This document shows positions 388 to 63,126 of a DNA stretch of 64,000 bases, one piece after another; the first letter of the stretch is position 1; each line of letters begins with the position of its first letter. Position numbers and translations under genes: made by a program. The notes under the pieces are model-generated. The model worked only from the letters and a program-made list of their open reading frames with translations, searched no databases and was not told the origin of the DNA. Source of the stretch: Paragordius varius (lineage: Eukaryota > Animalia > Nematomorpha); NCBI GenBank assembly GCA_964247055.1, contig OZ176053.1:7874001-7938000 (forward strand), in the 5' to 3' direction.

Positions 388-9990
<9,603 letters not shown>

Positions 9991-27291: not shown

Positions 27292-27577
27292 TCATAATAA
27301 GATATGGCTCAATTTTTTTAATATTTTTTTCTGTGCATCTATGTGTGTTATGGTATCGTTTATCTAAATTATAACCAGGTATACTTTTTGATTTATATCC
27401 TTTATCGACATATTAAGAGACTCGTTATCCAAAAGCTTAAAATAATTCTTCATTTCATTTTCAATTGTATGAATTGAATCCGATATAGATTCTTTTTTCG
27501 CATATCTTTAAATAAATATTTGGATTTTACTTTTTTAATAAATCAAACAATTTACTTGAAACATCGATTTTTTCCAT
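27292..27577 (-). CDS. Small (79 aa) predicted coiled-coil protein; exons 27577-27531, 27505-27385, 27363-27292
   Basis: GT-AG introns of 25 and 21 nt join an ATG-to-TGA frame: MEKIDVSSKLFDLLKKYAKKESISDSIHTIENEMKNYFKLLDNESLNMSIKDINQKINDTITHIDAQKKILKKLSHILL. Weak resemblance, from memory, to BORCS7. Confidence 0.55.
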
Positions 27578-27609: not shown

Positions 27610-27905
27610 ATGTGGAATATTTTTGAGCGCATTCCCTTTTATATGGTATCATTCCTTAAATAAATTTAGGATTATGAAGGACAAATGCTCGCAGAAAAAA
27701 TTTATCAGACAGTAATTACTGTTTGTGGAGTATTATTTTATTATAATAAAAGGTAATAGGTTTCGTTATAGGATATATTTTCCAAAGATATTCTTACACT
27801 GTCTATTCTCTTGGCATTGGGATCGCAATATCTTTATTGGCTACAATACCTTGGCCAATATATCGTAAACGCCCTCTAAAATGGCAAAAGCCAAAAGAAC
27901 AATAA
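27610..27905 (+). CDS. SPCS1: Signal peptidase complex subunit 1 (SPC12), 82 aa; exons 27610-27645, 27670-27729, 27753-27905
   Basis: Spliced product MWNIFERIPFYM|DYEGQMLAEKIYQTVITVCG|VIGFVIGY...IPWPIYRKRPLKWQKP matches the SPC12 signature (MDYKGQKLAE...PPWPIYRRHPLKW). Introns are 24 and 23 nt. Absent from the ORF track. Confidence 0.95.
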
Positions 27906-29337: not shown

Positions 29338-29435
29338 CTTTAGAATTTAGCGTGGATAAGCTTCTTTTCACAAATACCTATCTTGACTAATATTTTATAT
29401 TAGGCGCTTAGTTTTAGGTTTCAATCAGATATTAG

Positions 29436-29467
<32 letters not shown>

Positions 29468-30078
29468 GCAGTGGTATTCTTTTAAAAATTTTTCAGGCCT
29501 CTTTATAATATTTTTTGGCGTAAGAGCTACAATGTGTGTAATTAATACCGAATACTTGGCTTTTAAATATATTAAAATATGTCAATAACTATGGCCAGAA
29601 AAATCAATTTAAGGGGCTCATGCGGGCTATGGGCCCCGGATTACCGCACATATAAAGTGTCGTTCGTTTTTTCCCTAAGAAATTGAATTAGGCACGAAAT
29701 ATAGTGATTGCACAATTATTTAAAATATACTTTAAAATTTAAAAAATGTAAGAAGGCATAACCTGGATAATTTTATCGTATCCCTTGTTCTAAACTATGA
29801 GACTCCGATATATACTATATGGTTTTTGACCAGGCTCAAATTAATAAGACAAATGTAACTTATATAGAGATTAAAAATTCTACATACATAATTACTGTTA
29901 TTCTCTTCAAGTATTAAAGGTCGATATTAAAAAAGATTGCCGTGGTATTATTTTAATCGGATACCTGAAATTATATCAATCCAAAAAATAAAGTTTAAAT
30001 AACAATTTTCCAAAAGTTTAATGGTCATTCTATTTGGATGGGAAATGAGTAAAAATGTTATTATACCAAATTTAAATG

Positions 30079-33887: not shown

Positions 33888-34227
33888 TTTCATGATTATG
33901 AACTAAATAACCTTATTATACATTTTTAAATTATTCAATACGACTTTAGGATTATGATTCATGTTTAGGGCTTAACACATAAAATTTGACGGTATTGTCA
34001 TAATGATAAGTAGTGTGATAAAAATTCTCCGCTATAATACTTATTTGCACGGTGCTATTAATAGCATATTTAAATTATTTTAAATGCGTTTTAGTATAAA
34101 ATAGAGAAAAAATAATCATAATGCAAAAATAATTTAAATAACCTGCACTTTATTAATTCAACATGCTGTATTTGGCGGTAAACCCAACATCTTAAGGTTG
34201 ACGCTTGAAAAATTGCAAAATACTTTA

Positions 34228-36699
34228 ATGTCTTCTGGCCCGACTGTAAGATATCTTGTATCTTTTGCATATAATGGGTTGCCTTTTAAGTATGTATATT
34301 TTTTATCATAGGGGTCTACAGCAACAATTGGTTGATGGAGTGGATATATGCAGAACCGTATATGGTGTTTTTAAAGTATTTTTATATATATTCAAGAGTG
34401 CATTAATTTGTATTAGTCCCAATTCTTTCTTGAATTTAAGAGTAGTCGGTAGGACAGATGTAGGTGTCCATGCCTTGAATTCTGCTCTTAATTGTAATCT
34501 AAATCATCCTCAAAGTAATAAGTTGTATACGACTCAATATTTGAAGAAAAAATTAAATAACATCTTTATGGCAGCTAATGAGTTTATTCGGTAAATTCAT
34601 TTTAAAAATAGAGTAAATAATGTTCAAATAGTTCCCTTAACATTTAATTGTCGCAACCATTGTGTATCCAAAACTTATCTCTACAGAATTGCTACACCTA
34701 AAAGTTTTTTAGATATATAATGTAGATTCTGATAACATATTTAGAAATTCTGTGAACACACCTTTATGGCAATACAAGAATATTTACTATATACCGTAAA
34801 GAAATTTATTTTTTGGGTTCAGATTCATTCGATTTTTGTAAAACAGTATTTAAAAAGATATTTTTTAAATTAAATTTAAATGGTCTTTACAAAGACTGAT
34901 TGGTTGAAATTAATATGGTTTCTTAAATCCATAGTTTTAAAAAATTTATTATTCAATGGTAAGTCTAATCAATAGTAAAAACGACCTTATATATTTGATT
35001 AGGTTCTACCGGTACACACTTGGTCGCTCATAACTTATTATTTAATTTTATTATTGAAAAATTTATTTATGTATTTAGATATACCGACGTCAACATTAAA
35101 ACAATGGAGCAAGCCATTTCACTATTTAAGGGAACTCATGATTTTGAAGCATTTAGAAGCTTTGGTGCATCTAATGATGAAAGAGAAATCAGAACAAAAC
35201 GAAACATTCAGAAAGCAAATGTTAAAGAAATTAAACCAATAGTTGTGGAAGATGGATCCAATTATTTGAATGATATCATGCGTTTTGATCAATACAAATA
35301 CTATGAAATTGAATTTGCCAGCCGTGGTTTTTTATATCATCAGGTTTTGTAACACTGACATTTAATTTTTCAAAAACTTTATATGACACGATTTTTTGAA
35401 TGTTATATTTGCTATATAAAACAACTATTTTTTCACTAAAATACGCTTCCATTTTTTTATTTTACTTTTTTATTAATAAAATACGCTAAATTAATTTTTA
35501 CATTTTGATTATACTTTTATTATAGTGATAAAAACATTTGTAATAAACTGAAAAAATGCAGTTATATAAATTATAATTATAATGATGGACTTTATATATA
35601 AAAATCGGTAATATAGTACATGATAAATTTAATTTGACATTTGTCTCAAATTGGCATTTCTCCTGGAAAAACTAAAATATATTTTTACTATATTAATAGT
35701 TAATCTAACTAAATAGTTGAAATGAATTTTTATATTATTAATTGATGAAGATATCATAAATCAGGGGTGTCAAACACGCGGGTCGCATGCGGCTCGTAAA
35801 TTTAAATATCCACAAAAATAATGCCCACAAAATCTTACTAAAATTGATATTTCCCAAACAAATTTTCAGAAAACAAGAAAAAATTGTATTTGTTTGCATT
35901 TTCTAACGCTACAAATCAAATAAAATGCTTAACAATGTTCATATATATATATATATCGAATTCGGCCCACCAACATTTTCAAAAATGAAGCCCACAAAGC
36001 CATTTATGTTGGACACTCCTGATTTAAATGTTCAATTGTAGTGAGAATTTTTATAGGTAAAACAATAGTATGAGGAATCTTAATAAAAAGATGTAAAATT
36101 TCTGTTTAACATAACATAAGTCAACCATTATTCAACTACAAGACCACATACCGAAACTTATATAACTAATTATTCCAATTTTATTTTGTACTAATTACTT
36201 AGGTTCGTAGGATGATTGGAGCATCGATAGCTGCATCTCGTGGAATCATTTCTTTGTCAGACATTGAACAAATGTTACAAAAGCCAAACGAATTCAAATT
36301 TAACCCAAAAATATTAATTGCTCCACCCTATGGTCTTTACTTGGCAAAAGTTGATTTCGAATTAAAAGGTAACGATTATCGTTAAATCATTCAGATGTAA
36401 TTTAATTTATTATATCAAAATAAGAGATCCTTATCTTATAAATTATATTGTTTATCAAAATTTATGGATACTGGTTGATGTACATGTAATATTAATTTTT
36501 TGGAATGACCGATAAAATATATCTAACTTGAGAGATTAGCGTATCTTACATTTGGTTTTTTATTTTACCAATTACATTTTATTATTTCTGGTTGTTAGAT
36601 TTAATGGCATTTGATGAGGAATCGCCATTATATACTCATGAACCAGATGGAACCATATACCAGCTAACAGAGAATCAGCAAACATCTCAAAATTTATAG
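34228..36699 (+). CDS. PUSL1: TruA-family tRNA pseudouridine synthase-like 1; exons 34228-34289, 34312-34375, 34397-34590, 34612-34703, 34726-34795, 35079-35343, 36203-36368, 36599-36699
   Basis: Motifs RYLVSFAYNG, GRTDVGVHAL (catalytic Asp), KTYLYRI, GTHDFEAF, RGFLYHQ|VRRMIG, APPYGLYL. The first four introns are 22, 21, 21 and 22 nt. Confidence 0.93.
35762..36021. mobile_element. hAT-derived MITE in PUSL1 intron 6
   Basis: Ends CAGGGGTGTCAAAC ... GTTGGACACTCCTG; TSD imperfect (TCATAAAT vs ATTTAAAT). Confidence 0.7.
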
Positions 36700-37427
36700 A
36701 TAAATTTTGTGCACATTTTAATTTATATGTATGTTTTCGTTAACAGCACCATGCTTCTTTAATTAATAAAATTTTTCACATGGATTTTATTTTACTCTTG
36801 GTAGATAAAAAATTAATTTTTATTACATATATATAATAAATTTTTATCTATCTCATGATGTTTATTAGTCCTTTATAAATATCATCCAATGGTAAGAGTC
36901 TTACAGAGAAACAATTTTATTTTTATATATGTACGAGTCAATTACTTTATATGAAATAAATTAACTATCATGCTAACATGGCCTTGAAGTGATAAAAAGA
37001 GAGAAAGAGTCATAATATAGGATATATTTTTGATATTGCATTTATTTTTATCATTGGCTAACGATATATCCATTTTTTATTGTTTTGTCGTTTAACAGTT
37101 CCTTGCCTTTATGTAAAGTAATGAACAGACAGTATTTGAGGATTACTTTTTATGTAAATATAGATATTTTTTATTAAATTTAACGCATTTATTTACAAAA
37201 TGATAGCTAGCATTGTTACGAATACTAATAATATCTGCAAACAAATAAAATAAAAATATAAAATTTGAATTGCACATACAATCATGGAAATATTTATATA
37301 TTATCTATCGCCTGATACAAAATAAATATATATATATATATCTCATAGTAAAAATATTTGATAAATGAATCATAAATATTCATATTTAATGTCATGTACA
37401 AAATATAACTTTACAATTCTTATACAT

Positions 37428-38801
37428 TTAAAAAAGGTTGTCAGCAGGTGTCAAATAGCAAGCTAAGGCAAAAAATACGGATGTCTCAAAATTTAATTTT
37501 GCATTCTTGTATGACAAATTTTTGAATTGCAAGCTATTTTCATAATAGGTTTGACACGTACTGTTAGAAAGATATATATCTTTGTCAACACTAAATGGAT
37601 TATTTTCTGATTTATTACTAATGCTATAATTATTATAATTAATTTCCTTTTCCGAGGCTTTATCGGTCTTTTTGTAATTTATCACTGGATTTTTGTGCAA
37701 ACGATGTTTACAGAACAATATAAACATATTACCATAATTTCGCAATCGAAAAATTATATCGCTTGTTAAATTAAGTTTATAATTGGGAGAATTTTCTATG
37801 TCCTGTTTAAATTTCAGTGCTAGTTTAAAAGCCTTGGCACAAGTTAAAAACGGTAGAAGAAACCAAAAACCCTTCATAATTGCAAAGGTTAAGTATATGA
37901 AATATGGCAGAAATAATAAAATCCAATAGAACACAATTGAAGACACTGGGCCGATAATGTGTGCGAATGTTAAAACCAAAATATTATCTAACTTAATATT
38001 TTGTGAATTCTTTGTAATTTGGTCACCTTGATTGATCTTACCTTTTCCATTCATATGATTGTACGAATTTGGTTTATTATTGATGAATTCAGTATCCTTT
38101 GTGGGGCATAAAAATGCATCGAAAGTATTGTTACTATGTAAAACACATTCAGTATTGAAAAATAGAGGTAGGGAATACAATATTATGGCATATGAGGTGT
38201 GATCCCATGATATTTTACCCGTTTGTGCCAAAAAACTGAATAAAACACACACAGGCCCAAAAATGAGCATTGCAACTAAATCTCCCAATCCAGCAAAATA
38301 TTTTAATCCGATACCACCGCCTGTGTATAAAAATGAGCCTGACATACCACCAAAGTACACTAACGCCAATAATTCCAAAGGGGATGGAGATATTATGGAA
38401 AGCAATAAAAGGCAAATAAATGCAAAGATGTAAAGTGCACCTGCTAAATTGACGACTTCGGATGGACTTAATATTTTGTCAATAAGTATTCTATCCCTTG
38501 CGTTGACGCCTTTAAACGTATCCACACCAGTGTAATAATCATAATATGAATTCACCAAATTACCTGCCCCATGTATTGAGAGTGATATAATGAGCGTTAA
38601 AAGAAGAACTAGGGGATCAAAAAATGTTCGGCATTCGTTGTCAGCTTCCCCACAACTATCCTGAGTTTGAATATATTCTCCATATTTCAAAGCCAGAATT
38701 GCTCCCAAAATAATAGGTGCTGCGGATGCACTAAATGTCCATGGTCGTAATGCAAATAAATAATTTAGGTAGTGCTGAATCGCTGCTTTAAAATTTATCA
38801 T
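37428..38801 (-). CDS. UBIAD1: UbiA prenyltransferase domain-containing protein 1 (heix-like), single ORF of 457 aa with long insertions
   Basis: ALRPWTFSAS, HGAGNLVNSYYDYYTGVD, DRILIDKIL, GSFLYTGGGIGLKYFAGLGD, HSNNTFD, AKLN. Confidence 0.95.
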   Translation of the reverse strand: MINFKAAIQHYLNYLFALRPWTFSASAAPIILGAILALKYGEYIQTQDSCGEADNECRTFFDPLVLLLTLIISLSIHGAGNLVNSYYDYYTGVDTFKGVNARDRILIDKILSPSEVVNLAGALYIFAFICLLLLSIISPSPLELLALVYFGGMSGSFLYTGGGIGLKYFAGLGDLVAMLIFGPVCVLFSFLAQTGKISWDHTSYAIILYSLPLFFNTECVLHSNNTFDAFLCPTKDTEFINNKPNSYNHMNGKGKINQGDQITKNSQNIKLDNILVLTFAHIIGPVSSIVFYWILLFLPYFIYLTFAIMKGFWFLLPFLTCAKAFKLALKFKQDIENSPNYKLNLTSDIIFRLRNYGNMFILFCKHRLHKNPVINYKKTDKASEKEINYNNYSISNKSENNPFSVDKDIYLSNSTCQTYYENSLQFKNLSYKNAKLNFETSVFFALACYLTPADNLF

Positions 38802-39054
38802 CCAAAGGTGAAAATTTAAAACTAAAAAATACTACAACCATCTGGAGTTTCAAAAACATTTCCATATGAGAAATAGTAGTAAAAAAATAGATTTTATTCT
38901 ATTGTAAAAATCTCAACACTATTAAAGTATTTGTGATTTTGTTATCAAAACACGCACGTTATATGAAACATGTACATAAAAGTATTGTTATTTTAGTTTT
39001 GGAGATTTCCAGTTATGAAACAGGTGATTACCTTAGTTTTATAAGCATTTAAGG

Positions 39055-46100: not shown

Positions 46101-49100
46101 AAGATCATGCTATTATGATCGAAATATAAGCTTTATAATCAAAATTTTTACGATGTGTGTAATTACTTTCACGAACGCTACCCTTATTATCTCTACTATC
46201 ATCACGGCGGTCAGCATGGGAAGGAGGAGGGGATTGACCAGATGGCGCATGTTTACGGCTCTGATTATGCTGATGGTGATGATGATATCGTTCCCGAGAC
46301 GGGCTTCGTCTTCGTGATGAATAAGTGCTGTTGTGATGATGGTAATAATCACGGTCTCGATCGCGGTCATCTCTGTTTCTGTCTCGATCTCGGTCCCGCG
46401 ATCCAACGTTTCGGTAATTATCTCCGCCATAGCTGCTATCTTTATCTCGATCACTGCGTCTAACATTTAATACACGGTAAAAATTTTGGAGGATCGATCG
46501 TTTGGAAAAAGAATTAATTATACATTATTCCATCCAAGTTGAATATACCTAAATTATAAACCGGCACCAAATACTTAATTTCAATCCTATAAACAATGCG
46601 ATTACAATGTGTAGTTATTTTTAAAAAACAAGAAGATATACATGATAAAAAACCATGAAAAATAATTCAATAGAATTACCATCTGAACGGGTAAGCCCTA
46701 TAGTGCATAATTTAAAACAATAAATGATCAAATCTAAAAATCGAAGAAATGCCCTCAAAGGCGTACCGTACTTCGATTATTTGCAGTTATAATCCTTTTA
46801 TTCGAACATTATTATCATCAGTCACAAGGTTATTCAACCAAAAATGACAAATAACATATTTTGGGTATACAGAACTTACTGTTGTTAAAATCCGTAATAT
46901 AATGATAAAGGATAATTAAATACAATTAAATGAAATCATAAATAGAAATTTAAACGATATATGAAACCCTTCGTCAATAGTAATCAATATCATCTTTATC
47001 TTATGTTTCTTATCATAATAGAGTGCTTCTTAGTTATTAAATTGATTTCTATGAAATCCCTAAGTAGCTATACTCTAAATCTAGGCTCACCCCTAGAGTT
47101 AATTTTCAGTTTATTTTCAAATTTTCAGTTTAATTTTCATAAATTACATTAAATTTAATTTAAATTTGTATAACCAACTGCATTTATACCAAAATTGCAA
47201 AGTTGGATATATATACGAAATCGATATGTGAAAACTCCAAGTCAAATAGTTGTGTCGTACTGATGAGTGCTAACAAGCACGAAACTAGTCTGCGATTACT
47301 ATTGATGAAGGGTTTCATATATCGTTTAAATTTCTATTTATGATTTCATTTAATTGTATTTAATTATCCTTTATCATTATATTACGGATTTTAACAACTG
47401 TTAATACAGAACTTACGTCAAATCTTAATGTTATAAATTAGATTAGGTATAACGCACTAATGATTCGGGCTCAGTTAAGGGTATATCTTTCGAAACAATA
47501 AGAAAATAAAAATACCTAGATCCAATGTGTGAGGGCATCCCTCCACCACTGTATGATTTAGTTTCTATTCCATGCAATGTGTCTTCAAGCGATTCAATCA
47601 ATATCTTACATCGTTCATCCTGAGCAATTTTGGTTTGTTTGATAAGAGATATGGCTGTAACGAGTGTTTCTATGGCAACACCAAACTCTCCAACACTCGC
47701 ATCCGCTACGGCTCTTGAAATGGCTGTACTTGAAATAGTTTTATTGCGATTCATGATATCTTCGAATTCTTCCTCAGACACGCCTAAATTTCTGCAATGA
47801 TATGGAGCGTACATTAATTTATAAATGATAAAATTCCGATTCTGCAATACTAGTTTAATACGGAAACAAAAAAATTTTATGGAGAGCACAAATGTGATTT
47901 GCTTAAAATTTATAAAGTCCAAATGACTCCAAATACCATTAACACTACTAATATGACATAATTAGAATTTTTAATTTACCATTTACCATAATAACCATAC
48001 TTTTTATAAGAGTATATAAACTCGCATTCTTTTGAACTTAAAATAAAGAAAAGACTAGGTATTATCACCAGTTAAAACCATTTTGATTTTGTAACGATTA
48101 AATTTTATGAGCATGGTTAGTTTATAATGATATAAAATATTCCACAAATTTATCCAAAATTAAAACATGATTTTATTTCTAAAAAATTGCAATTTACGCA
48201 TATCGATCGCCACGCGAATTCCCATCTCCCAAACGATGGTTATATGAACGAGGGGGAGAACGGTTGTAAGAAGAATTGTAAGAGCGATATTGATCTAATA
48301 TGTATACAATGAATATTAGTAGCCATATGTTATATATATAAAATGGCGGGAGAAAACGCAGATTACCACAATCAACTAAATAAGACTATGACTAACTTTA
48401 ATGCGGTATACAATATCATTATAAAATATCATACATATATATTAATCCCAGGTAGAAAATCAACGTTTGAAACCTTGTTTTAGCAACTATGTCATTGTAC
48501 AGTATACTGTACTTCATAATATATAAACATTTTTTCCCCTTTTTCCCAATTTTCACCCATAGCTTAATATAAAATTATCATTAAAAGCTCTTTCTTTCAA
48601 ACTAAACTCGATAATAATATAATCTAATTGCTACCTTCTCCGTCTCTGTCTCCGCGGTGAGAATGTGAATGTGGGGGAGATCTCCCACGTGGACTCATTC
48701 GTCTAGCTGCATATTCATCATCCCTTCTTCTCCGATCCATATCACGGTCATCATGCTTATTAGAGTCAAAATTATAATTATAAATACATAACGTCGTAAA
48801 AAAATTAAAAAAGACAACCACATTGTCGTAAATTGTTTTTAAATGAGATTCAAGTTGGCAACACACACACACTCTATTATATTTTTTATATTGTAGCTAT
48901 AATGCGCTCGATCGCACCCCTAAAGGATAATGCCATACGAACTTAATTCAAACTGATGAGCGTCTATAACCATAGTATAAAGGTTATATCGAAAAAAAAG
49001 AAGATTTGAAATAATAGTATAGTATGACGTACTGTCTTTATAACCACAAAAAAATAATTTAGCGTTTATGTTTTTGTCTGCATAAAATTTGCAAAAATTC

Positions 49101-52100
49101 AAATACTGATGCTCTTACAAGATTATCAGGTCTTGTTTGTGTGGTGTTGTCAGGAGGCATGTTGAGAGCACTAGCAGCAGCAGCGGCAGCCGCGGCGGCT
49201 GCAGCCGCATCTACTGAGGGAGGACCGCCGACATTGCTTGTATTAGAGGCCAAGAAGGCTGGATTGATGTGAGGTATGGGCAAAGGTGGTGGTGGTAAAC
49301 CAAGTGAGGACGGTGGTGGTAAAGAGGGGAAATTCATACGCATTTCATCTGTTGTTTCGTCAAAATATTATACCATTTACAGTTCAAATTCACCCTTAAA
49401 CAATTCAAATTCACCTTCGAACATTTCAAATTTACCCTCAAATAAATTAGGTGTTTTTTAAGATTAAATATTGACTATATTTTTTTATATTTTTAAAAAA
49501 AGAAATTTTGTATGTAATCAAAAAAATACATAAAAAATAATAAACTTTACAATAAAAATATGTTTAATTTTAATGATGAGTAATATTAGACCGAAATTTC
49601 ATAATAGGGTGAATTTGAATTGTTCAAGGGTGAATTTGAATTGTAAATGGTATATATAAAAGATAGTTTTCGACAAAATGAAAAAACATGGGGTAACATG
49701 CAACGGTAATGAAGGTAAAAAATTTATTGGGATCAAATGTATATATATATATATATATATATATAAGATCTTAAATATACAAGATATTCTAAGCAAAAGC
49801 ATGGAGTGAAAATTTGTAATGGTAAAAAGTGGCAAATATTCATAAATATATCATTTATTACCATATATAGGTGTATATTCCCTATAAGGCCCCATTCGTA
49901 TAGAGCTTTTACAGCTAACTAATTAGCTCAAGCTGATAATCATTTTTCCGATTTTCGAATAAGGGCTAATTTCTTAATTATAATCATTTTAAGTTAAATA
50001 TACTGTACTTGGATGTAATTGGATTCATATTGCAAAATAATTGCAAAAAAAATTATTATTTATAATTAACAAGCTTTGCAATTATTTAATTAAATATATT
50101 TTATTTCTCAAAAAAAGTCTTGATGCGTTATATGTATTTTACATAACAATCGGGTCCGTTAGTTATGTGGAAGGGGAGATTTTAAATATAAACTTTAAGT
50201 AAAAGTAGGTGAAATTTCGAAAAAATATAAATGGTATTTTATAATAATCCATATTATAGGAAAATCGGAATGTTTAATGAGAAAAAGCGAGTTTGTAATA
50301 TAAGAAAAAGACAGAATATAATTTATATATATATATAAACTTTAACAGAGTGAGTCCAACACGCGGCCCTCCAAAATATTTTTGAAGCCCGCGAGAAATC
50401 TAAATACAAATTTTTACGTCTATATAAAATTAATTTTTTTAAACAATATTTTCGAAGTTTTTCCAATATTAGACAATGTTATAAGAAAAAAATGTTAAAA
50501 TAAATAGTAGTTTTTACAGTCTTGTATAAAATCTAATAAAATATTTGTTACGTTAGATTTTTCGATCAAAAAACGCGGCCCGTGAGCCATTTGTGTTGGA
50601 CACCTATGCTTTAAAAGATTTAAAGATTATATATATGTTAAATATATATTTCAAATAATGATTATTCTAAATTTCGCATCGGCAGCTGGAACATTAATTC
50701 GCTAACATCTAAAGGCTTGGAGATTGCTGACGTGCTTAAGGAAAGAAATATTCCAATTTGCGCTATTCAAGAATGTAGATGGCTAAATTCCGGAACCAAA
50801 TCCATTCTTGATTTTAAATTAATTTGGAACGGCAACAAGAAGGTTAAAACAGCTGGTGTGGGTTTCTTCATCCACAACTCATTATATGACAATATTAAGG
50901 CAGTTAATTATGTAAACGAACGCATTATATCCATTACAATCCTTATTAATAATATAACATACAATTTATTTTCGATCTACGCGCCTCACAACGGCCATTC
51001 ACTAAAAGATAAAGAAGCTTTTTGGTCTCAATTACATGAGCAAATAATAAATGTACCCGATCATCATCAACTGATAATTTCTGGGGATTTTAATTCACAT
51101 ATATCCACAAATCCTATTCAATCTGTACATGGAGGTTGGGGATTAAACGAGACAAATGAAAATGGTGAATTTTTATTGGACTTATCCAACAGCTGTCAAC
51201 TAAGCATAATAAACACTTTCTTTAAAAAATCCCTCAAACAACGTTACACTTACTCCTCAGGAAATAACAATTCCATGATTGATTACTTCTTATGCAAACA
51301 AACTCAAAGGAAAAATTATTTTAATATCAAAGGAATACCTTGCTTGAATTTAAACCATAAACTAATGATTTTAGAACTTGTAATAAGGAACACCCATACT
51401 ATTCACCCCCCCACAAAGAAACAACCTATCAGATACCGGAAACTTAAAGATGATAAAATAAAAAATTCCTACGCTTCCACAGTTGATAAACTACTATCGA
51501 CAAAGGAAACATTATCTAACCCAAATGAAATATGGAATAATATAAAAACTATATGCGTCAGTACTCTTGATTCCTTGGTTGGACGTTCAAAGCATAATCG
51601 GCGGATTCCTTCGACCCACAATTGGTGGTGGAATGAAGACATCCGTAAATTGACTCAACTTAAACGCAAAACCAGCCTAAACTACAGGAAAAATCCATCG
51701 ATTGAAAATAAAAACATCTACCTATCCGCAAAACGAAACTGCCAAAAAGAAATACGTAAAGCTATAAACATTAAAGCCCTTGAAGTTGCAGAAAATATTG
51801 ACGAACATACAGAAAATAACACAATATACAAATACATCAAACATTCAAACCCAACCAACACCACCACATATATAAAATCGGTGAAAACAGACAATAACAA
51901 CATCTGTCAAATTCCTACCATAGTTAATAAAACCTTTGCAAACTACTTTGAAAATACTTTAAATCAAGAAAATAACACAATCCTACCCCATGTACCGCCA
52001 ACATTAGGGTGCCCCGAATTCATTGATGCAAATTGCATTCAATCGGCGATTCTAAAATTAAAGAACGGTAAAACACCAGGATTGTCGGAAGTTACTGTCG

Positions 52101-55100
52101 ACATTCTTAAACCCATGGCTACAATAAGTGATCATTTATCAAAGCTCTTTAACCTCATCATACAAATGGAAGTTATCCCTGAAGACTGGCAAAACAGCAT
52201 CATCATACCCATCTACAAGGGAAAAGGTGATTCACTCCTACCTAGCTCTTTTAGGCCCATTAAAATCTTGGAACACACCTTTAAAATTTTTGAGCTCATT
52301 CTATACAATAAGATTAAACTTAAAGTTCATCTAGACGACATTCAATTTGGCTTCCAATCTGGCAAAAGCACAATTGATGCGATTTTCATACTCCGCCAAA
52401 TGCAAGCAGCCCATCTCAGAAATACACCCCTCTATTATGCCTTCTTCGACCTAGAAAAGGCTTTTGACTCTATCCCAAGATCGATGATAACATGGGCCCT
52501 AAGAAGTAAGGGAATCGAAGAATGGATTATCCAAAGCATAATGTTGCTATATTCCGGCTCCAAAGCCCAAATCAAAACTTTCTATGGCCTATCAGAATCT
52601 ATCAATATACACTCAGGGCTGCACCAAGGTTCTGTCCTGAGTCCCTTGCTATTCATCATAATAATTGATGAGATTACAAAGAACATTCGCAGGGGCTTAC
52701 CCTGGGAACTGCTCTTTGCAGATGATCTGGTAATAATGGGCTCATCTGAAGACGATCTTATCTTATCTATTGACAAATGGAAAAATTGCTTGGAAAGTCA
52801 TGGCCTTAAAATCAATCCCAGCAAAACAAAACTAATGCACGACAATATAATAAAGCCCATTAAGTACCCATGTAGAATTTGCAGCCTAGCTGTAAAGGCA
52901 AATTCTATATTGTGTACTAAATGTAATTATTGGATACATAAAAAATGCTCAAACCAAAAATCACTTAAGGTTGATGCCTTTACTTGCCCAAGTTGCATCG
53001 ACAACCTACCCATACCAGAACAAATTTTAAACTCAATCCCTAATACCTACAATTACGAAACTGTTACTCACTTTAAATACCTGGGTGACGAAATATCCGC
53101 AAAAGGAGGTATCAGTGATGGCCTCAAACACAGATCATCTGAAGCATGGAAAAAATACCATGCACTAAAACACATAATAAATAATAAATACATAAAACTT
53201 GAAACAAAATCGCAACTATATTCTACCATTATCCGTCCCGCACTAACCTACGGCACGGAATGTTGGCCCATGACAAAGTCAAACCTTGGTAAATTCCAAA
53301 GATCAGAATCCAAAATACTCAATACAATACTTTTTGTACATAATCCTAAACTCTTTAACTTTAATAATCACTTTGACCCTTATAAAATCCTTAATATCAC
53401 TGCTCTTGATCGCTTTCTAAGAGCTAAAAGACTGAGATGGGCTGGTCACATCCATCGTAGACCACCAGATAATTATATACATATAATGATGTCCTACTCC
53501 ACACCTAGCTCAAAGCCTGGCAGACCCTTCAAAAGCTGGATCAGTACTATATATGATGATCTTACTGAGACCAAATTAAAAATAGAAGATGCGGAAAATA
53601 GAAACAATTGGAAAACAGCAATAAAAACTTATCTCAAATCAGCTACCTTCAACTCTGAAGAACAACAGCTTTGATGATATATAATGATTACATAAATTGT
53701 GGTGAAATATAATATTCAACTAGGATGATAATTTAGGCATAAATCGATAAAATATAATCAATAAAAAGTGAAAAATTATATTACTATTTAAAGCCTAAAA
53801 AGGCTAAATTTTGAATATAAGAAGGAAATTGGTATGCTAATATTATGACTAAATAAACAGATATTATGAAATAAAAAAAAAATTTGGGTATACTTATGGT
53901 TTGTGAAGTGTGTACTATATTTGTGCTAATGATTTAAGCTTATACTTAAACGATAAATTTTAACCTAAAATTATTTGTACTATATATATATATATATATA
54001 TTAATATCAACATTTATATATGAATATTTTGCAAAATATTTGGTATATAGTAGAAGAATAAAACGAAAATGATAAATCGCCCTTAAAATTAATAATCCTT
54101 ATTAATATTATCGATTGATAATAATCTTATAACTAGTAATCTTATAATAATACTTAAAATTAATAGTCAAATTAAAAATTACCATTTATATTTTAATTAT
54201 TTTTTATATTTATACAATTTTTAAATAAAATGTTTAAGCAACGAGAGCCATTTCAGAAAAAATAAAGGATATTTAACTGATTTTTATTTAATATATGCTA
54301 ATTTAAAAAGTTGTTTACTTTTATCGTAATTTTACAGCTCCATATTTTAGATTTACCCCTCATTAAATAAAAACCTTAGTCAAATAATTGAAATATTATT
54401 TGGACAAAATCTAAAGCCTAGGTTTACTTTTTTATGGAATATATTTAGAGAACTTGGCGTTACAAATATACTTTGGCAAAGACTTATGATGTTCATTTTT
54501 ATCAAAGTAGGAATAACATAAAATTGATATATTTACATGGCACTATTATTGGATTCTTTATGTAGTCATAAATTATTTTGTTTGTCTAAATTGACTCTAA
54601 TAGGCGACGTAATTTATGCCAAATAAATTTAAGAGATTCCGAAACGTTATTAAAATTAGAAGGAAATTTATTATCAAATCATATGAGCATTCCTAACTTA
54701 TGGCGGTTGGCAAAGGACAAAAACAAACATTACAAATTATTGAAGGATGTATGTACTATGACAAATGATGTTATATTTTGATCCTCCAATATATCTCTTA
54801 GTATATTTATATTTGGTATAAGAAACATCACAGAGGAGTTGAAGATGTTTGTACACCGTTATCTTTAAACACGAGTAATATTTTATCGTTTACGGTTCTG
54901 AGATCATTTACTTCATCATAGTAAGCGGCAACACTAGATGAATATGTAACTTTTGGGTAATTATCTGCCTATTCCGGGAGTGGTATATACTCTATTTTGG
55001 ATATCTACAGGAAGTTTAGGATACTTTAGTCCAGACCCCAATGTGATTCCTAGAGAAAGAGAAACTACAGCCTGGTATGATAGTATGTTCGATAATCCAG

Positions 55101-58100
55101 GACCTAATTCCAGAGAACCGTTGGGGCAACCAACAAATAAAGAGAGTATATACAACTCCCGAAAAAGGCAGATAAATACCCTAAAGTTACATATTCATCA
55201 AGTGTTGCGGCTCACTATGAAGAAGTATATGATTTCAGAACCGTCAACGATAGAATACTCAATGAGTTAAAAGATAATGGTGTACAAACATCTTCAACTC
55301 CTCTGTGATGTTTCTTATACCAAATATAAATATACTAAGAGATACATTGGATGAACAAAATATAACATCATTTGTCATAGTACATTCATTCTCCGGTTTC
55401 GATTCATAGTCTTGTTTCAAAGCTTTGGTATTTTTTTCCTCATCACTTTATGGCTTCAATATAATCTTCTTCGTCTTGATGTCTGTGTTTGATAATTTTT
55501 TTATCAGCAGTCAAATAATCAAAAGGAATATCCCTAGAAAAGGGAAAAACATCTCTACATATTTTAAAATACTTTTTAATTGTGCCCACTATCATTTTAA
55601 TTTCCTCCCCCCCCCCGCCCCCATTTTTTTGATATTTGATTGCAGTGTGATACTTTAGATTAATACCAATACAAAGAAATCTTTCTCAGTATCAAGTGAA
55701 ACACTTCTTAGAGAGCATATAAAGATACGTGAACAATTAGCGATAGCTCTGTTTAACCATTTTTAAACCTACTTCCAAGTAGATGAAATTTGACATTCAA
55801 AACAATCGCATAAACTATCAAATCAATCAAATTGTTTTGCTGTTGTACTTCAAAAATGTAAAACCGGCATCAAATCTTTATCGCTGACCTCTATTCTTAC
55901 TTGAAAGCCAAAAGATTGAGTTTGGCAGGTCTAATACAACTGATAATCACATACTAATAAAGCATAATAGTGCCTTACAAGCTCTAAAAGAGCATTTAAA
56001 ACCTGGTCTTTCACGATCATTCACGATTTCGTTATGCTGTATATCTTATAGTGCGGCACGTAGAGCTTACTAGAAATGCAAAAATAGAATCATCAAAGAT
56101 CACCTTCAATTTCTAAAACCAATGTCATAAAATATAAAACCCTATCTTATAACCTCAAAAAAATGGTAAGCCATGTTCATCGGATTAAAAAATTAAAAAC
56201 AAATTTTCAGAAACAGCAATTAAAAGATTTGAAATTCATAGTGAACAAATAATTGTGAAGCGTATTGGTTACATATAGTGATATATAAATATCGAACGAT
56301 GAAAATTAAATGGATCACCGTTAATAGCGTTCGAAATGTGATGTTGATGATGATAGTGATAAAGTGGAAAATAAATGAATCAAACAAGGAATTAATAGAT
56401 CAAATCCTACAAAAGTGAAATAAAAAGATAAAGTAATTATTTTGGTATTTTATAAAAAAAAGAATTTATCAAATTATAATAGGAAAAACATGGGATATAT
56501 ATATATATATATATAAGTAAAAAAAACTATTTGCGTTACTATACAAAGTTTTTTTCCAACTAAAAATCAACTCACCGAAACAACTTATAAAAGGCACATG
56601 ATCTTAGAACATCATTATTTAACTATTAAAAGGGGTATCTCAAGCTTTTTGCATATGTTTTATAAAATCTTTCTATAATTCATCACCTTTTGGGGCAGTT
56701 TTACATTCCAGAGCAATATGAAATTTCAATATTTTAAAAGATATTAAGCCGAAATTCGCCCCACCATTTTTTTCTTAAAATTTTTTAAATCACAGGGTTA
56801 GAAAATGTGGATAATCAATTTTAGTAAGCTTTCAGGTTGCATTTCACCAGCAAATTTATTTGCAAAATTCAGCTCTGGGATATAAAACTGCTCCAATATG
56901 TCACGAAGTGTTAAACCGATTGAGTAGACAGATATGTTTTTCTGCATTGAATATGCAAAAGTTTTTATGTTTTTATTAAATAGATGCAAAATGCCTAATA
57001 ACGGCTTGACACTGTAATAATGTTCATTGGATGCTGTGTGTGTGAGGATTTTACTATAACTTATTTTAGGCGTCACACTGCTAAATAATCGATTTGGCAA
57101 TTTGAACTATATTAATCTAAATTAAATTTTTAGAAAATTTCATTTTGCTCTTAAAATTAAATAAATATCAAAAAAGTTTAATTTTTTTAGATGACAATAA
57201 CCATTTTTGACCATATATAAAAATGAACAATTTTCTCCATAGAACTTTCAATTTTTATATAAGTTGTGGCTCAAGTATTGGATTGGTATGTAAAACTGGC
57301 CCAAATTTTGTAAATTTAAAATAAACTTTTAATATTTAAAAGGAAAAAACAAAAGTTCTCGTTTTTCAAAAATAAAATTTTTTACGGAAAAAAAAATAAT
57401 TTCTATCTCTTTTTTCAAATTTTAATAAGTCACATTTCGAATTTTTACTTATTTTGTGCACACCGTGCAATATAACTTCTTAACTTTAATAATTAATTTT
57501 TTATAGTTTTTATTTAATAAAAATACGAAAATTTATTGAAAAAATAAAATTCAAATCAATCGTTTTATATCACATTTTTTTCAAGTTAGGCATTTAGTGC
57601 AAATGTTTCATTATCTGATACAATAAAATAAAATTATCTTCTTATAATTATAAAATTTAGAATTTATTATATGAAATTCCAATTCCATTGCGATAATATA
57701 TTTATGGAATAATTTCATTCATTTTGAAAAATGTCAAAAAATGTTCAATTTTATAATTAAACAAGCATCATTTCAAACCTCAAATTCTGGTTACAATCAA
57801 ATATAAATTTTTTACCCATATATATTATACATTTTTATTTATAAATATATATATATATATATATATATAATGAAATATGATGAGATCAAATCTTTCAAAT
57901 ACATATATTGAATATATGTTTATACTTTTGCTGCATTTCTATTCTGATACCCATAAAGGTTTTTTAAAAAGACATAGATTTAAGAATTATAATAACATAT
58001 AACATAATTAGTTTTGCACATTTTTAATATAGGAATATAAATAATCAATATCACAGGTTAAAATATACCAAATTACCAGTATCCATATTGCACCAAAATA

Positions 58101-60738
58101 ATTAATTTATAATGTATGAGCCAATAATATAAAAAAATATTCTCGAATAAAATGTAAAAATATAATTGATGACCATACATATATAACCGATAGTCTTTGA
58201 TAAATTTAACACCATGTTAACATAATGTGAACAATATATTGTAAACTCGTGTTTAAAACTTAAATATAAAATATATCCATACATAACAATGGCTTAATGA
58301 ATGTTACATAATATAATAGAAAATAAACTTGAAATGTTTCTCCCCATGTTTGATCCGAACGAAGGGGGTGGTCCATTGAAATGCTAAAAACAACAAATAA
58401 CGGATATTTGGTATTTTTTCATTTTTTTTCCATTCGTTTATTAGGGTGTTGTAATCCATAAAGTGAGCATCAAATTATTTCAACAAACATATCATATGAT
58501 TGAACACAATAGAAGTTAAAAATGTTAAGAAATACAGTAAAATACTTTAAATATAAATATACATAGTTTGCAAACATGTCACAAAAATTATACATTTCTC
58601 ATGATAATTATACATAAAAAAGACTAGGTTTAGTTATTATTAATAAAAAATGCGTAATTATTAAAAAAGATATTGTAATTTGTTGTTAAATGCCAAGAAG
58701 AAAATAATTACAAAATCCTTTTTGTCTGGCAAACCAAAGCGTTCACCCATTAAAGGTGGGAATCCCAAAGGTGGTGGAGGCATATCTATAATAATTTGAA
58801 ATGAGGTTTATCTCCTATATTCATGATATATTTGCTCGAAAATTACGTCAAAATTAAAGAAAAAAATGATAATTAGCGAATAAAATGAGTAAAAAATTAG
58901 ATAGAATAGGCAAATAAAATCGAATTAAATAGGAAAATTATATTTTAAGTAGGCACCTTTTTAACAGTTAATTTCAATTGGGGAGAGATACAATTACCAG
59001 CTTTTTTATCTTAACGAAAGTGTGCTAATTTAAAATTAGACGTGAAAAACTGCTAATCAACCTTTAAACGCTTAAAAACTGCTGAATAATATTGATCCTG
59101 AATGCTAGGTTAAATATTAATAGAATAAATATATTAATAAAACATATATTAATCAATTTAAGTTATGGGCATCCATGTTCAACACACTTAAAATATCTAA
59201 AGACCAAATTTTGTTTAAAAAACGCATAAAATCAATCAAAATTTTTGTTTCGTTTTCCTAATAAGTTCTGTTCACTAAGGGGAGCCGAAGGAAACTGGGA
59301 TATATTCTAACAGTAGGTTTGATATCAATTAATAAATATAATTTTGGAATTTAATATTTTTAGTGAAATACAAGTATTGAACTATGTACATTCGCTGTAA
59401 AAATTACTAAAAATCTAAATTTGCGTCTATAAAAAGATAATTAAATAGCTTACTACTAAGCATTTAAGTCAATTCATAAAAACTTTAGCCCTCAAAACAA
59501 AAACACCATATTGATAAAAAGCAAGTATTCAATATATATATTATTTCGTTATAAAATCTGGTCCTCTAAAGTAAAATCAACTAATTATTTGCTGTACTTA
59601 CTAGGCGGTAGCGTTAAAGGAAATGGGGAATTTATCCCTGTGGCTCCACCAGGTGCCATTAAGTGCAGGGGTGGAGGCAAGCTACCTGGATTAAAAGATG
59701 GTGTAGCACTCGATTGATGGAGTTGATGCTGAGGTGGAGGCCCAAAATTTGGATTTGGATTAGGTGTTGGTTGTTGTCCAGATGTCCCACCAACGTTACC
59801 GCTAGTTCGTTTAGGTCTCTCTAAACAGGTTTACGCAGTAAACAAAATTGAAAATAAAACAGAGCAATTTTTTATGAACGCTCAATTTGAATAAAAATAT
59901 AATGAAATTCACTAAGCTATTGGAGAACGGCAATCAAAGGTGTACGGCCATTCAATAGCAAATCCCCTGACATATGATGAACATAAAATCAATCATACTG
60001 TTTTATACCTTGTTTTTTTTATATAACTACTTTAAAATATTTGAGTGTTACCAATCCAATTTATATATCTGTTTAGGTTGTTTTAAAAAGGTTTTAAATT
60101 AATACTTTTAAAAAATATTTGTTCGTTAGTTATTGATTCGTTTGAATTATTATATTGGTATTAGCCTTTGAATAAAAATAAAGTACTATTGTCTGTATTT
60201 GTACCTCCAGTTACTGCCTTCGATTGATTTTCAAGGTGAATCAATGAAGTTTTTGTAAACGCAAATAATACTGGTCTCTGTCCATTTATTTCAAAATTTT
60301 CCAACTTTTCTTGTAATACTCGACTAGAAGCTTCAGATGCAAAATGTATTGCTGCAAATCCCTTTGATTGCCCGTTTGTTCTATTCTCGTAAAATTTAAT
60401 TTCTACACAATCGGTTACTCCTACATTGTAAAAAGCATTCAACAAATCTTCATCAGTGGTCCACTTTAAAAAATTAGATGATTGATACCCAGCATAAATT
60501 TCCGATATAAAATGAATATCTTTTCCCCAAATGTTTAACCAGTGACACCTGAGTTTTATTTGATAAAGAATCCGTAGATTGAGTATTTGGTGTCAATACG
60601 TCATTGTATAAGTCCATATCATTATTTTCATTATCATATTCATTCTGCAATAACGAAATATAAACATTAAAAAACCTGGTTGGCAAATTCTTGCTCGATA
60701 TCGTCGGCATACAAATCAATAGCCACTTCATCCGACAT
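43113..60738 (-). CDS. CPSF6: Cleavage and polyadenylation specificity factor 6 (CFIm68); exons 60738-60676, 60644-60489, 60463-60187, 59820-59602, 58785-58712, 58383-58329, 49348-49119, 48755-48635, ~48294-48197, 47791-47516, 46459-~46170, 43339-43113
   Basis: [18 protein letters not shown]; RRM YIGNLCW|WTTDEDL...[15 protein letters not shown]; Pro-rich exons with HINPAF; [28 protein letters not shown]...[20 protein letters not shown]; RS/RD-rich tail. Splice phases are consistent throughout. The donor of the penultimate exon is ambiguous. Confidence 0.93.
43440..44520. mobile_element. Old fold-back/MITE with long degenerate inverted arms in the last CPSF6 intron
   Basis: 43455-43830 aligns loosely to the reverse complement of 44130-44500 (e.g. 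GGTGCTTTAGGTTTTGGCCA vs GGTGCTTTTGGTTTTGGTCA; AAAATATATGCTAA.TTTGATATC). A further relative lies near 41900-42030. Confidence 0.5.
44672..44875. mobile_element. Tc1/mariner-type MITE (204 bp) with TA target duplication
   Basis: TA|CAGTCATGTATGTTTAGAAATGTCAGA ... TCTGTCAATTCTACATATACATGACTG|TA. Confidence 0.75.
44882..45502. repeat. Inverted-repeat element with 30-bp arms (44882-44911 / 45473-45502)
   Basis: GATAGCTAAAAGCTTCAG(T/G)ATAATGAATAT, one mismatch. Confidence 0.65.
45951..46125. repeat. 36-bp inverted repeat (45951-45986 / 46090-46125)
   Basis: ATTTCGATCATCATGGCATGATCTTGATCATAGTGG vs the reverse complement of the right arm ATTTCGATCATAATAGCATGATCTTGATCACAGTGG; 3 mismatches. Confidence 0.8.
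46880..47403 (+). mobile_element. Penelope-like element remnant: hammerhead-bearing pLTR preceded by an inverted partial copy
   Basis: 105-bp inverted repeat (46881-46985 / 47294-47398, one mismatch), hammerhead at 47254-47296, flanking 13-bp direct repeat ATACAGAACTTAC (46867-46879, 47404-47416). No RT or GIY-YIG ORF remains, so the PLE assignment is an inference. Confidence 0.65.
47254..47296 (+). ncRNA. Minimal type I hammerhead ribozyme
   Basis: GTCGTA-CTGATGA-GTGC(TAACAA)GCAC-GAAA-C(TA)G-TC-TGCGAT: full catalytic core, 4-bp stem II, 6-bp stem I with two G.U pairs, palindromic stub stem III; predicted cleavage after GUC at 47290. Confidence 0.85.
49369..49654. mobile_element. MITE, same family as 6968-7258, about 19 nt from a CPSF6 3' splice site
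   Basis: About 50-bp inverted arms TATACCATTTACAGTTCAAATTCACCCTTAAACAATTCAAATTCACC / reverse complement at 49606-49654. Confidence 0.75.
50346..50608. mobile_element. Degenerate hAT-derived MITE
   Basis: Ends CAGAGTGAGTCCAACACGCGGCCC ... GTGTTGGACACCTATG; flanks share CTTTAA. Confidence 0.6.
50665..53680 (+). mobile_element. RTE-clade LINE, family A copy 2: uninterrupted ORF, truncated by 11 nt at the ATG, antisense within a CPSF6 intron
   Basis: 985-aa open frame (50717-53674) nearly identical to copy 1; perfect 10-bp TSD ATAATGATTA (50655-50664, 53681-53690); short TGATGATAT tail. Confidence 0.97.
54751..55385. repeat. Long fold-back: 243-bp arms (54751-54993 / 55143-55385), 149-nt loop
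   Basis: Hand alignment gives roughly 90% arm identity with equal arm length. Confidence 0.92.
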
Positions 60739-62333: not shown

Positions 62334-63126
62334 TTATTTAGATAAATCGACTCCAAGCCATAAAGCTAGCTCTTCTTTCTGAAAAATTCCATCATGGTTT
62401 TTGTCGCACATTTTGAGCATGAGATTGCGGAATTTCTCTATTTCTTCCGATTTTTCAGATGCATCCACCTAATAATTTTATATTGAATATTTACATCAAC
62501 AGTTTTGAGCACATCCCTAATAAAAGCTAGCAGTTCGTTTTCTTCCAACAAACCATCGCCATTCTAATATAAAATAAAAGCAACAATTTACTTTTTATAT
62601 ATGTAGGAAAACTCTGATTTATATAAAAAATGATAGTATAATGATTGGAATTTTTAACACATTTTAAATTGTTTAACATAAAAACAATAAAACCCCTAGA
62701 TTTAAAAAAAATAATACAGTAAAGATGGATATTATACAAGCAATTAATATATATATATATATGGCTCATCTGCATCATTGGTTTTTTTAAAATATTTTTT
62801 AGCGAATGTAATTTTTGATACACTATCAAAAAAAATTTCAATAATACCCACAAGTACACGCAACTTTTAACGGTTTATTTTCAAAATTGAAAAATGGAAT
62901 ATTTAAAAAAGTTGATTATGATTAATGGGCATATTGTGGTACAAAAAATATTTACTATCAATTTAATTTGTGAAATTTAAAAGTGGTTAATTTGTTATGT
63001 ATTTGGGCAAACTGTTATGCGAAACCATGTTCATAAAAATTTCAATGCAAATATAACATTCAATGAAACCTTATCGTAATGATGAAAGATTGAGCAGAAG
63101 GTGTCAAATTTTAGGTCATAGTTATT
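62334..63126 (-). CDS. 3' end of a secretagogin/calbindin-like EF-hand protein; exons 63126-63070, 62563-62495, 62468-62334; the upstream part is unresolved or outside the window
   Basis: FHHYDK|NGDGLLEENELLAFIRDVLKTVD|VDASEKSEEIEKFRNLMLKMCDKNHDGIFQKEELALWLG: two EF-hands with a secretagogin-like C-terminus; last intron 26 nt. Absent from the ORF track. Confidence 0.85.

Follow-up and report, generated by a model that had tools for sequence, protein, structure and literature searches.

Short segments of 21–26 nt with GT..AG ends interrupt several animal genes in the window (the whole 64,000-nt stretch of DNA that was analyzed), and they are very probably genuine spliceosomal-type introns that lie beside long introns of the same genes. 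An initial annotation had listed 13 such segments in genes for PUSL1, SPCS1, CPSF6, an LRP-like protein, an EF-hand protein, and a small protein. When we checked the sequence, all 13 began with GT and ended with AG on the coding strand, and a further intron of 26 nt that we identified in PUSL1 has the same ends. The lengths are narrowly distributed, with 12 segments at 21–26 nt and outliers of 31 and 34 nt. The 5′ signal is GTA in 10 of the 13 and GTT in the other 3, and G occupies position +5 in just 1 and position −3 in none, the latter being T, A, or C. The interiors are 88% A+T (50% T and 38% A) with 4% G, while the exons have 33% G+C, and no separate polypyrimidine tract is present, which bears out the earlier description of an A/T-rich body lacking such a tract. 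At position −7, 8 of the 13 introns have an A, and A residues are plentiful from −13 to −4, to be read against a background of 88% A+T and in only 13 sequences; no branch motif was distinguishable from the background in these 13 A/T-rich sequences. Retention would produce a premature stop in 12 of the 13 candidates, the exception being PUSL1 intron 2.

The gene for the PUSL1/TruA-like pseudouridine synthase (34228..36405, + strand) encodes 307 aa with 43% identity over the whole length to its ortholog from Gordionus (XP_065321656/CAK9292838). Its exons 1–4 are at 34228–34289, 34312–34375, 34397–34590, and 34612–34703, and exons 5–8 at 34726–34795, 35079–35343, 36203–36368, and 36395–36405. A stop-ridden region becomes a single open frame once four short segments are removed, and the spliced product gives an end-to-end TruA-family alignment with the Gordionus ortholog that is gapless at junctions 1–3. 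Intron 1 (34290..34311, 22 nt, phase 2) coincides in codon and phase with intron 1 of Gordionus, which is 43 nt long; its own retention leads to a stop within the intron. Intron 2 (34376..34396, 21 nt, phase 0) and intron 3 (34591..34611, 21 nt, phase 2) share position and phase with Gordionus introns 2 and 3, which measure 41 and 10,569 nt; retention of intron 3 gives an immediate stop. Intron 4 (34704..34725, 22 nt, phase 1) was placed by spliced alignment and contains an unused AG at intron bases 8–9. The nearest Gordionus intron, also of phase 1 and 2,928 nt long, lies about 11 residues further on, in an indel-rich stretch where the alignment is ambiguous.

The same gene contains long introns, as the initial annotation had stated. 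Intron 5 (34796..35078, 283 nt, phase 2) has the junction YYIP/YTDV, which corresponds in phase to HFFP/YPDF at a 101-nt intron of Gordionus, and intron 6 (35344..36202, 859 nt, phase 0) splits YHQ/VRR at the place and phase of a Gordionus intron of about 417 nt. The structure around intron 5 is less certain, and an aligner with flat gap costs chose another path with a micro-exon there, an overfit in a variable region; we retained the 283-nt intron as the model, since the junction agrees with Gordionus both in position and in phase. A probable intron 7 (36369..36394, 26 nt, phase 1, GT..AG), which was not in the earlier list, has the position and phase of Gordionus intron 7 (K/D, about 182 nt). 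If it were retained the protein would end 5 codons later, so that homology alone leaves retention or splicing undecided. The short PUSL1 exons gave no match in Pfam.

Comparable segments are found in four genes with recognizable relatives and in one without. The gene for signal peptidase complex subunit 1 (SPCS1; 27610..27905, + strand, 82 aa) has two phase 0 introns, at 27646–27669 (24 nt) and 27730–27752 (23 nt), which are supported by continuity of the Pfam profile SPC12: positions 2–20 match exon 2 and positions 22–71 match exon 3. Exon 3 also aligns with human SPCS1, and keeping either intron leads to a stop; a protein search with exon 3 returned no ortholog within the length range that it covered. 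In CPSF6, on the − strand, the 5′ exons (60164..60738) encode the N-terminus and an RRM found with the RRM_1 profile, and two phase 0 segments of 31 nt (60645–60675) and 25 nt (60464–60488) interrupt them. The RRM_1 match begins at profile position 10 downstream of the 25-nt intron, and the first strand, which this match lacks, is FYIGNLCW at the end of the upstream exon; for the 31-nt segment, the evidence is continuity of the frame from the ATG. The rest of CPSF6 (47443..60163, − strand) includes a Pro-rich exon near 49059–49343 and an RSLD exon within 47443–47922 (Pfam RSLD_CPSF6, E = 7e-37). Between CPSF6 exons, on the opposite (+) strand, lies a LINE (50717–53674) with a 2,958-nt ORF for 985 aa with reverse transcriptase and endonuclease. 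CPSF6 has at least one multi-kb intron, which bears this LINE.

On the − strand, an LRP4/5/6-like YWTD propeller is interrupted by a 26-nt, phase 2 intron (9683..9708), and the flanking pieces align with residues 455–499 and 502–563 of LRP4 and with residues 9–61 and 67–128 of LRP6. A second, tentative LRP intron (9929..9962, − strand, 34 nt, GT..AG) has a convincing acceptor only; the exon before it would comprise just about 14 codons, for which no match is recognizable, and the real donor may be located further upstream. A secretagogin-like EF-hand gene has a 26-nt, phase 0 intron before its last exon (62469..62494, − strand). The exon downstream corresponds to EF-hand 6 of secretagogin (residues 240–274 of 276) and the exon upstream matches EF-hand 5 of calbindin weakly; retention would shift the frame and lead to a stop. 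Finally, a small coiled-coil-like gene (27292..27577, − strand, 79 aa) was recognized from GT..AG ends and a restored frame, with introns at 27506–27530 (25 nt) and 27364–27384 (21 nt) placed by frame restoration; it had no family match in Pfam and no homolog was found. On removal of the segments, a continuous conserved frame results in PUSL1, SPCS1, CPSF6 (25 nt), LRP (26 nt), and the EF-hand gene (26 nt), with products collinear with orthologs, profiles, or solved structures, while for the 34-nt LRP segment, the 31-nt CPSF6 segment, and both segments of the small gene what is restored is the frame only.

These differences between the segments bear on an alternative that we consider possible though rather unlikely, namely that not every listed segment is an intron, and that the four just named and the in-frame 21-nt segment of PUSL1 are coding or parts of longer introns. 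The four have no homology support across the junction, the short exon upstream of LRP 9929–9962 adds to the doubt, and PUSL1 intron 2 is the only short intron of that gene that reads through in frame: it is stop-free, its length is a multiple of three, and by sequence alone it could be translated. However, intron 2 sits exactly at a Gordionus intron position, where its translation would create a 7-residue insertion that is absent from the Gordionus ortholog, and its G+C content is 14%, well below that of the exons. The doubtful segments also have the same GT..AG ends, length class, and extreme A+T content as the well-supported ones.

A different reading is that splicing removes conventional introns of at least 30 nt by way of other splice sites or exon skipping, and that the tiny GT..AG pairs are coincidental. 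The A/T-rich DNA leaves ample room for such solutions, with more than 200,000 stop-free GT-AG paths through the 5′ region of PUSL1. We compared these paths by spliced alignment with a purpose-written vectorised dynamic programme, using the Gordionus ortholog as guide and a flat cost per gap. For every minimum intron length set between 14 and 21 nt, the alignment returned exactly the four short PUSL1 introns at the annotated coordinates, with a score of 305. Raising the minimum to 23, 30, and 40 nt lowered the score to 190, 190, and 170, a loss of 115 already at 23 nt, and the best paths with these longer introns deleted conserved residues. For the whole gene, the scores were 545 and, with longer introns, 412. 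GT..AG also outscored ten control pairs of boundary dinucleotides. When length was unlimited, a 13-nt alternative to intron 1 (34278–34290) gained 2 points, and this alternative is off the conserved intron position. We regard longer introns in place of the tiny ones as very improbable.

We also asked what the sequencing runs say about these loci. The runs that contain the PUSL1 locus (X1, X3, X4, and X5) are all genomic, and the SPCS1 stretch was absent at ≥90% likeness from the possible-RNA runs X8–X10, which carry the same species label, and from run X7. Both results would fit decaying pseudogenes in which the short segments are chance frame-breaking insertions. Against this, every break is a GT..AG segment of 21–26 nt, in at least five genes removal yields conserved proteins of full length, and the positions in PUSL1 coincide with introns of the ortholog. 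Moreover, among the listed PUSL1 coding differences between individuals, a partial sample of at least 14, 9 were synonymous and 5 were not (P = 0.0005 against an expected 79% non-synonymous), and the PUSL1 exons show signs consistent with purifying selection. Pseudogene decay therefore appears extremely improbable. Hardly any weight can be given to the idea that the segments are cut from the DNA, like the internal eliminated sequences of ciliates that they resemble in size, or are assembly artefacts: the four PUSL1 segments are passed straight through by contigs of DNA runs X1, X3, X4, and X5 from three samples (intron 1 being present in those of X3 and X5) and are found in every DNA run examined, no joint that skips 21–22 nt at these segments is among the joints listed from the DNA runs, the ends are GT..AG and not TA..TA, and the positions are those of ancestral introns.

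The source of the DNA is almost certainly a nematomorph, judging from two best matches and one gene neighborhood. A search with PUSL1 exon 6 in 1.84 billion representative proteins returned a sole match, from the nematomorph Gordionus. The neighboring UBIAD1 ortholog (37428..38801, − strand), a single intronless ORF of 457 aa that gave no hit in an exact look-up, also has its best match in Gordionus, with 291 bits and 97% coverage, while insect sequences reach at most 224 bits, a gap of 67 bits. PUSL1 and UBIAD1 are arranged tail to tail both here and on Gordionus chromosome OX940783.2, where they are 31 kb apart and UBIAD1 is interrupted by introns of about 5.6 kb and 385 nt. The G+C content is 27% both here and in Gordionus. 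These matches and the common gene order speak against a dicyemid, the one origin for which the initial annotation had not considered such introns novel. LINE copies, at least three of them, and extended non-coding regions also lie in the window. A compact genome in which short introns neighbor each other is not what we observed, as the same genes have introns that measure 283 nt, 859 nt, or several kb.

We consider it highly probable, from the sequence evidence above, that these are genuine spliceosomal introns of the U2 type, with GT-AG ends, and that their length was reduced to 21–26 nt in a nematomorph lineage. Minimal introns would have gone from a size class of about 42 nt, the one seen in Gordionus, down to one of about 22–25 nt, while a tail of long introns from 0.3 kb to several kb, some with LINEs, would have persisted. 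Intron lengths in animals usually form a peak of short introns followed by a long tail; what is unusual here is the place of the short-intron peak, not the shape of the distribution. In such introns the 5′ site may be cut down to GTA or GTT, and the branch adenosine may lie in an A/T-rich stretch about 4–9 nt before the AG, giving a lariat loop of roughly 12–17 nt. There would be no room for a polypyrimidine tract, and the 3′ site would be the first AG past the branch point. This rule would account for the AG at bases 8–9 of PUSL1 intron 4 being ignored. In ordinary splicing, an AG upstream of the branch point is unused, and this AG is followed by an A-rich stretch in which the branch point could lie; the length floor that the initial annotation had deduced from it is therefore not needed. 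Since 12 of 13 candidates give a premature stop if retained, unspliced mRNAs are probably removed by nonsense-mediated decay. The initial annotation had also proposed a spliceosome remodelled for very small lariats, an idea that finds no support here: the window contains no spliceosome components, snRNAs included, and the Rfam scan was empty.

As to how this came about, we tentatively propose, at somewhat less than even confidence, that within Nematomorpha, once the Gordionus lineage had split off, the workable intron minimum was cut by roughly half, from about 42 nt to about 22 nt, and that the genome in which this took place was large, rich in transposons, and retained its multi-kb introns. 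In that case the shrinkage would not be a side effect of genome compaction, and its cause would be a lineage-specific change, either in the spacing needs of the spliceosome or in deletion bias. Tiny introns in a repeat-rich genome with long introns would weaken the view that intron shrinkage simply follows compaction, and Gordionus, as a sister lineage with short introns of 41–43 nt and one intron of 10.6 kb, offers a natural comparison for what sets the minimal length. There may also be practical consequences. Gene predictors and read aligners that bar introns below 30–40 nt would probably break many genes here, and broken gene models could distort estimates of gene loss and BUSCO completeness for Nematomorpha. 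If our reading is true, such introns would have been hidden by minimum-intron cut-offs, and published figures of gene loss in the phylum may be too high as a result.

To our knowledge, introns shorter than 30 nt were long believed to be absent from animals. A survey of 51 animal genomes, dated September 2026, found introns of <30 bp only in myxobolids and Dicyema, which are tiny, highly reduced parasites (PMC13644364). The initial annotation had correctly named dicyemids among the lineages with very short introns and had left out the myxobolid cnidarians (PMC13644364). If the introns described here are genuine, they represent a third, independent animal lineage with introns below 30 nt and the first ecdysozoan case, and, as far as we know, the first in a large-bodied animal with muscles, a nervous system, and a repeat-rich genome that keeps long introns.

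The myxobolid introns have a median of 27 bp in Henneguya salminicola and of 22 bp in Thelohanellus kitauei and Myxobolus rasmusseni (PMC13644364). Like them, the introns in the window are animal GT-AG introns of 20–27 nt at conserved positions in a parasitic host, with little 3′ signal beyond the AG, no polypyrimidine tract, and weak A residues before the AG. Myxobolids and Dicyema likewise have signals reduced to GTa ... AG, and U2 snRNA and U2AF are conventional in both lineages (PMC13644364). The two situations differ in that myxobolids are cnidarians with compact genomes of 20–200 Mb, in which most introns are short and short ones adjoin each other, whereas the genome here is bilaterian and LINE-rich, and its tiny introns lie beside others that measure 283 nt, 859 nt, or several kb. 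Their introns are also backed by Iso-Seq RNA, while ours are known from DNA. Dicyema japonicum, for which introns of about 26 bp are quoted in PMC13644364 from Lu et al. 2019 and Zverkov et al. 2019, is similar in length class, in reduced splice signals, and in being an animal and a parasite; dicyemids, however, belong to the spiralians, are extremely simplified, and have a small genome whose introns are almost all tiny.

Outside animals, introns measure about 25 nt in Paramecium and 18–21 nt in the Bigelowiella nucleomorph. These introns resemble those described here in length and A/T content, in their GTA...TAG-like ends, and in tending to produce a stop when they are retained, but ciliates and the nucleomorph are unicellular or reduced systems without multi-kb introns in the same genes, and there is no evolutionary link. 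The introns of Stentor are even shorter, at 15–16 nt (PMC13644364). The closest comparison is with Gordionus, which has the same genes and, for PUSL1, the same intron positions and phases, and in which a short class likewise coexists with introns of many kb. In nematodes, the minimal class is about 40–50 nt. Unlike the short introns of Gordionus (41–43 nt) and nematodes, those of the window are about half as long and fall under the 30-nt limit that is usually assumed for animals.

Each of the four PUSL1 segments that the initial annotation read as tiny introns starts with GT and ends with AG: intron 1 (34290-34311, 22 nt), intron 2 (34376-34396, 21 nt), intron 3 (34591-34611, 21 nt) and intron 4 (34704-34725, 22 nt), all on the + strand of a window with a G+C content of 27%. 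Once they are deleted, a continuous frame runs from the ATG at 34228 and the spliced product has 307 amino acids; when they are retained, stops and frame changes disrupt the region in all frames. The proposal that long introns stand beside tiny ones in one gene is borne out by PUSL1, which also has an intron 5 of ordinary length (34796-35078, +, 283 nt) and an intron 6 of 859 nt (35344-36202, +). Following the gene downstream, we found a probable tiny intron 7 (36369-36394, +, 26 nt).

We searched 1.84 billion representative proteins with PUSL1 exon 6 and obtained one relative, a "tRNA pseudouridine synthase A-like" protein of the nematomorph Gordionus sp. m RMFG-2023. The spliced PUSL1 protein aligns with it end to end at 43% identity (46% over residues 1-137), and junctions 1-3 are gapless in this alignment. 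Independently of the visual reading, we used a purpose-written protein-to-genome spliced aligner guided by the Gordionus ortholog. With GT..AG boundaries and a minimum intron length of 14 to 21 nt, the optimum was exactly these four introns (score 305), and the best scores with a minimum of 23, 30, and 40 nt were 190, 190, and 170. The whole gene scored 545 with tiny introns allowed versus 412 with them barred. Ten control pairs of boundary dinucleotides all scored below GT..AG, the top control reaching 287. When length was unlimited, intron 1 had a GT..AG alternative of 13 nt (34278-34290) that scored 307; we rejected it in favour of the 22-nt reading, as it misses the conserved intron position and is, to our knowledge, shorter than any known intron.

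We placed the exons of the Gordionus gene in its locus, L001, using identical peptides and GT-AG splice junctions, giving introns of 43, 41, 10,569, 2,928, 101, ∼417, and ∼182 nt in order. Introns 1, 2, 3, 5, 6, and 7 of the window gene are identical to these in codon and phase. Intron 4 equals its counterpart in phase, but the local alignment is rich in insertions and deletions and homology is ambiguous. The shared codon and phase imply that the 22-nt intron 1 corresponds to the 43-nt Gordionus intron, the 21-nt intron 2 to the 41-nt intron, and the 21-nt intron 3 to the 10.6-kb intron. At this last position (L001 5411-15979), 10,569 versus 21 nt amounts to a 500-fold difference at one orthologous site.

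Contigs from four DNA runs (three samples) cross all four PUSL1 segments uninterrupted; hence, the segments are genomic in several individuals and not an artefact. We also rejected the reading of PUSL1 as a pseudogene, because synonymous changes are in excess among the coding differences between individuals: 9 of the 14 listed, a partial sample, are synonymous (P=0.0005), while random change would make 79% non-synonymous. Retention of the tiny introns would introduce a premature stop in 12 of 13 cases, the exception being PUSL1 intron 2, whose 21 nt are in frame and stop-free. All runs that contain the PUSL1 locus are genomic. The 5.9-kb stretch around SPCS1 (24900-30800) was found at a likeness of at least 90% neither in three possible-RNA runs, X8-X10, which carry the species label of the best DNA run, nor in one further run. 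The DNA runs that contain parts of the window carry three organism labels (A, B, and C), and this mismatch hints at mislabelled or cryptic species in the public data.

Several short introns listed for other genes held up against protein families. In SPCS1 (+, 82 amino acids), exon 2, of exactly 20 codons, matches positions 2-20 of Pfam SPC12, and exon 3, which can be aligned to human SPCS1, matches positions 22-71. Because the match continues over both exons, the 23-nt intron (27730-27752) is well supported; the 24-nt intron (27646-27669) is required, since the conserved start of exon 2, DYEGQ, would otherwise lack an initiation codon. The start codons of SPCS1 (27610, +) and a small coiled-coil gene (27577, -) are divergent and only 32 nt apart, so close that a promoter and a 5' untranslated region for each gene would hardly fit between them. 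In CPSF6 (-), the RRM_1 match begins at profile position 10 in the exon 3' of the 25-nt intron (60464-60488), and the absent first RRM strand was found at the end of the exon 5' of it. The flanks of the 26-nt intron of the LRP4/5/6-like gene (9683-9708) match LRP4 residues 455-499 and 502-563. In the EF-hand gene, the exon 3' of the 26-nt intron (62469-62494) corresponds to EF-hand 6 of secretagogin, and the exon 5' of it matches weakly. The 31-nt intron of CPSF6 (60645-60675) is a weaker candidate, suggested by frame continuity from the ATG, and the 34-nt LRP segment (9929-9962) is tentative, with a convincing acceptor and an unconvincing donor. A family search with the small 79-amino-acid gene gave no recognisable match, so that the restored frame is the sole support for its two introns (27506-27530 and 27364-27384).

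As a class, 12 segments measure 21-26 nt and the two weaker ones 31 and 34 nt. The 5' end is GTA in 10 of 13 and GTT in the other 3, with G nearly absent from position +5; the base preceding the 3' AG is T, A, or C and never G. The interior is 50% T, 38% A, and 4% G, and the exons have a G+C content of 33%. In agreement with the initial annotation, no branch motif could be distinguished from the A/T background, although A is frequent 4-13 nt before the AG. The length floor proposed from the skipped AG in PUSL1 intron 4 is not needed: this AG (bases 8-9) precedes an A-rich stretch, and ordinary selection of the first AG downstream of the branch point would suffice.

The best UBIAD1 match is also from Gordionus (291 bits, 97% coverage, versus at most 224 bits for insects). 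In both genomes PUSL1 and UBIAD1 share a chromosome in tail-to-tail orientation, 1 kb apart in the window (34228-38801) versus ∼31 kb in Gordionus, where the pair is at 68.00-68.05 Mb of OX940783.2 (L001 and L002). UBIAD1 is intronless in the window and carries introns of ∼5.6 kb and 385 nt in the Gordionus genome, which likewise has ∼27% G+C. The sole PUSL1 relative, the top UBIAD1 match and the common gene neighbourhood show that the animal is not a dicyemid, the proviso attached to the initial claim of novelty; by protein comparison it is a nematomorph well diverged from Gordionus (∼40% identity in PUSL1 and UBIAD1). Below Gordionus, the next best matches of UBIAD1 (37428-38801, -) are nearly all from insects, the hosts of hairworms, a pattern that may stem from ecdysozoan ancestry, database sampling or gene transfer; the window protein is 90-130 residues longer than the insect ones. 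At 33800-33996 and 38922-39700, DNA-run depth is 100-400 times that of the surroundings, which indicates that repeats of very high copy number lie on either side of the PUSL1-UBIAD1 pair. LINE copies (10993-14008, +; 19859-21982, -; 23681-24154, -; 50717-53674, +) encode an endonuclease, a reverse transcriptase and, after these, a PHD/RING-like zinc finger; the last copy has an intact 985-amino-acid ORF and sits in antisense orientation within an intron of CPSF6.

Overall, the tiny segments are confirmed as described and are very probably real introns of a non-dicyemid animal, and to this extent the initial reading stands; the remodelled spliceosome that it proposed is a hypothesis. Animal intron lengths normally form a short-intron peak followed by a long tail. 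We found no report on introns of nematomorphs, hairworms or Nectonema in the full-text literature, where subscription journals are thinly covered and a brief earlier mention is possible; the word "intron" is absent from the Gordionus genome report and from a preprint that compares four nematomorph genomes. Among 51 animal genomes, introns below 30 bp occurred only in myxobolid Myxozoa, a precedent missing from the initial list of animal cases, and in Dicyema japonicum; their splice signals have dwindled to "GTa ... AG", and both U2 snRNA and U2AF are conventional (PMC13644364, Mol Biol Evol, September 2026). Nematomorpha are unmentioned there. The novelty lies in a peak at ∼22-25 nt in a repeat-rich ecdysozoan genome, against 41-43 nt for the same introns in a sister lineage.
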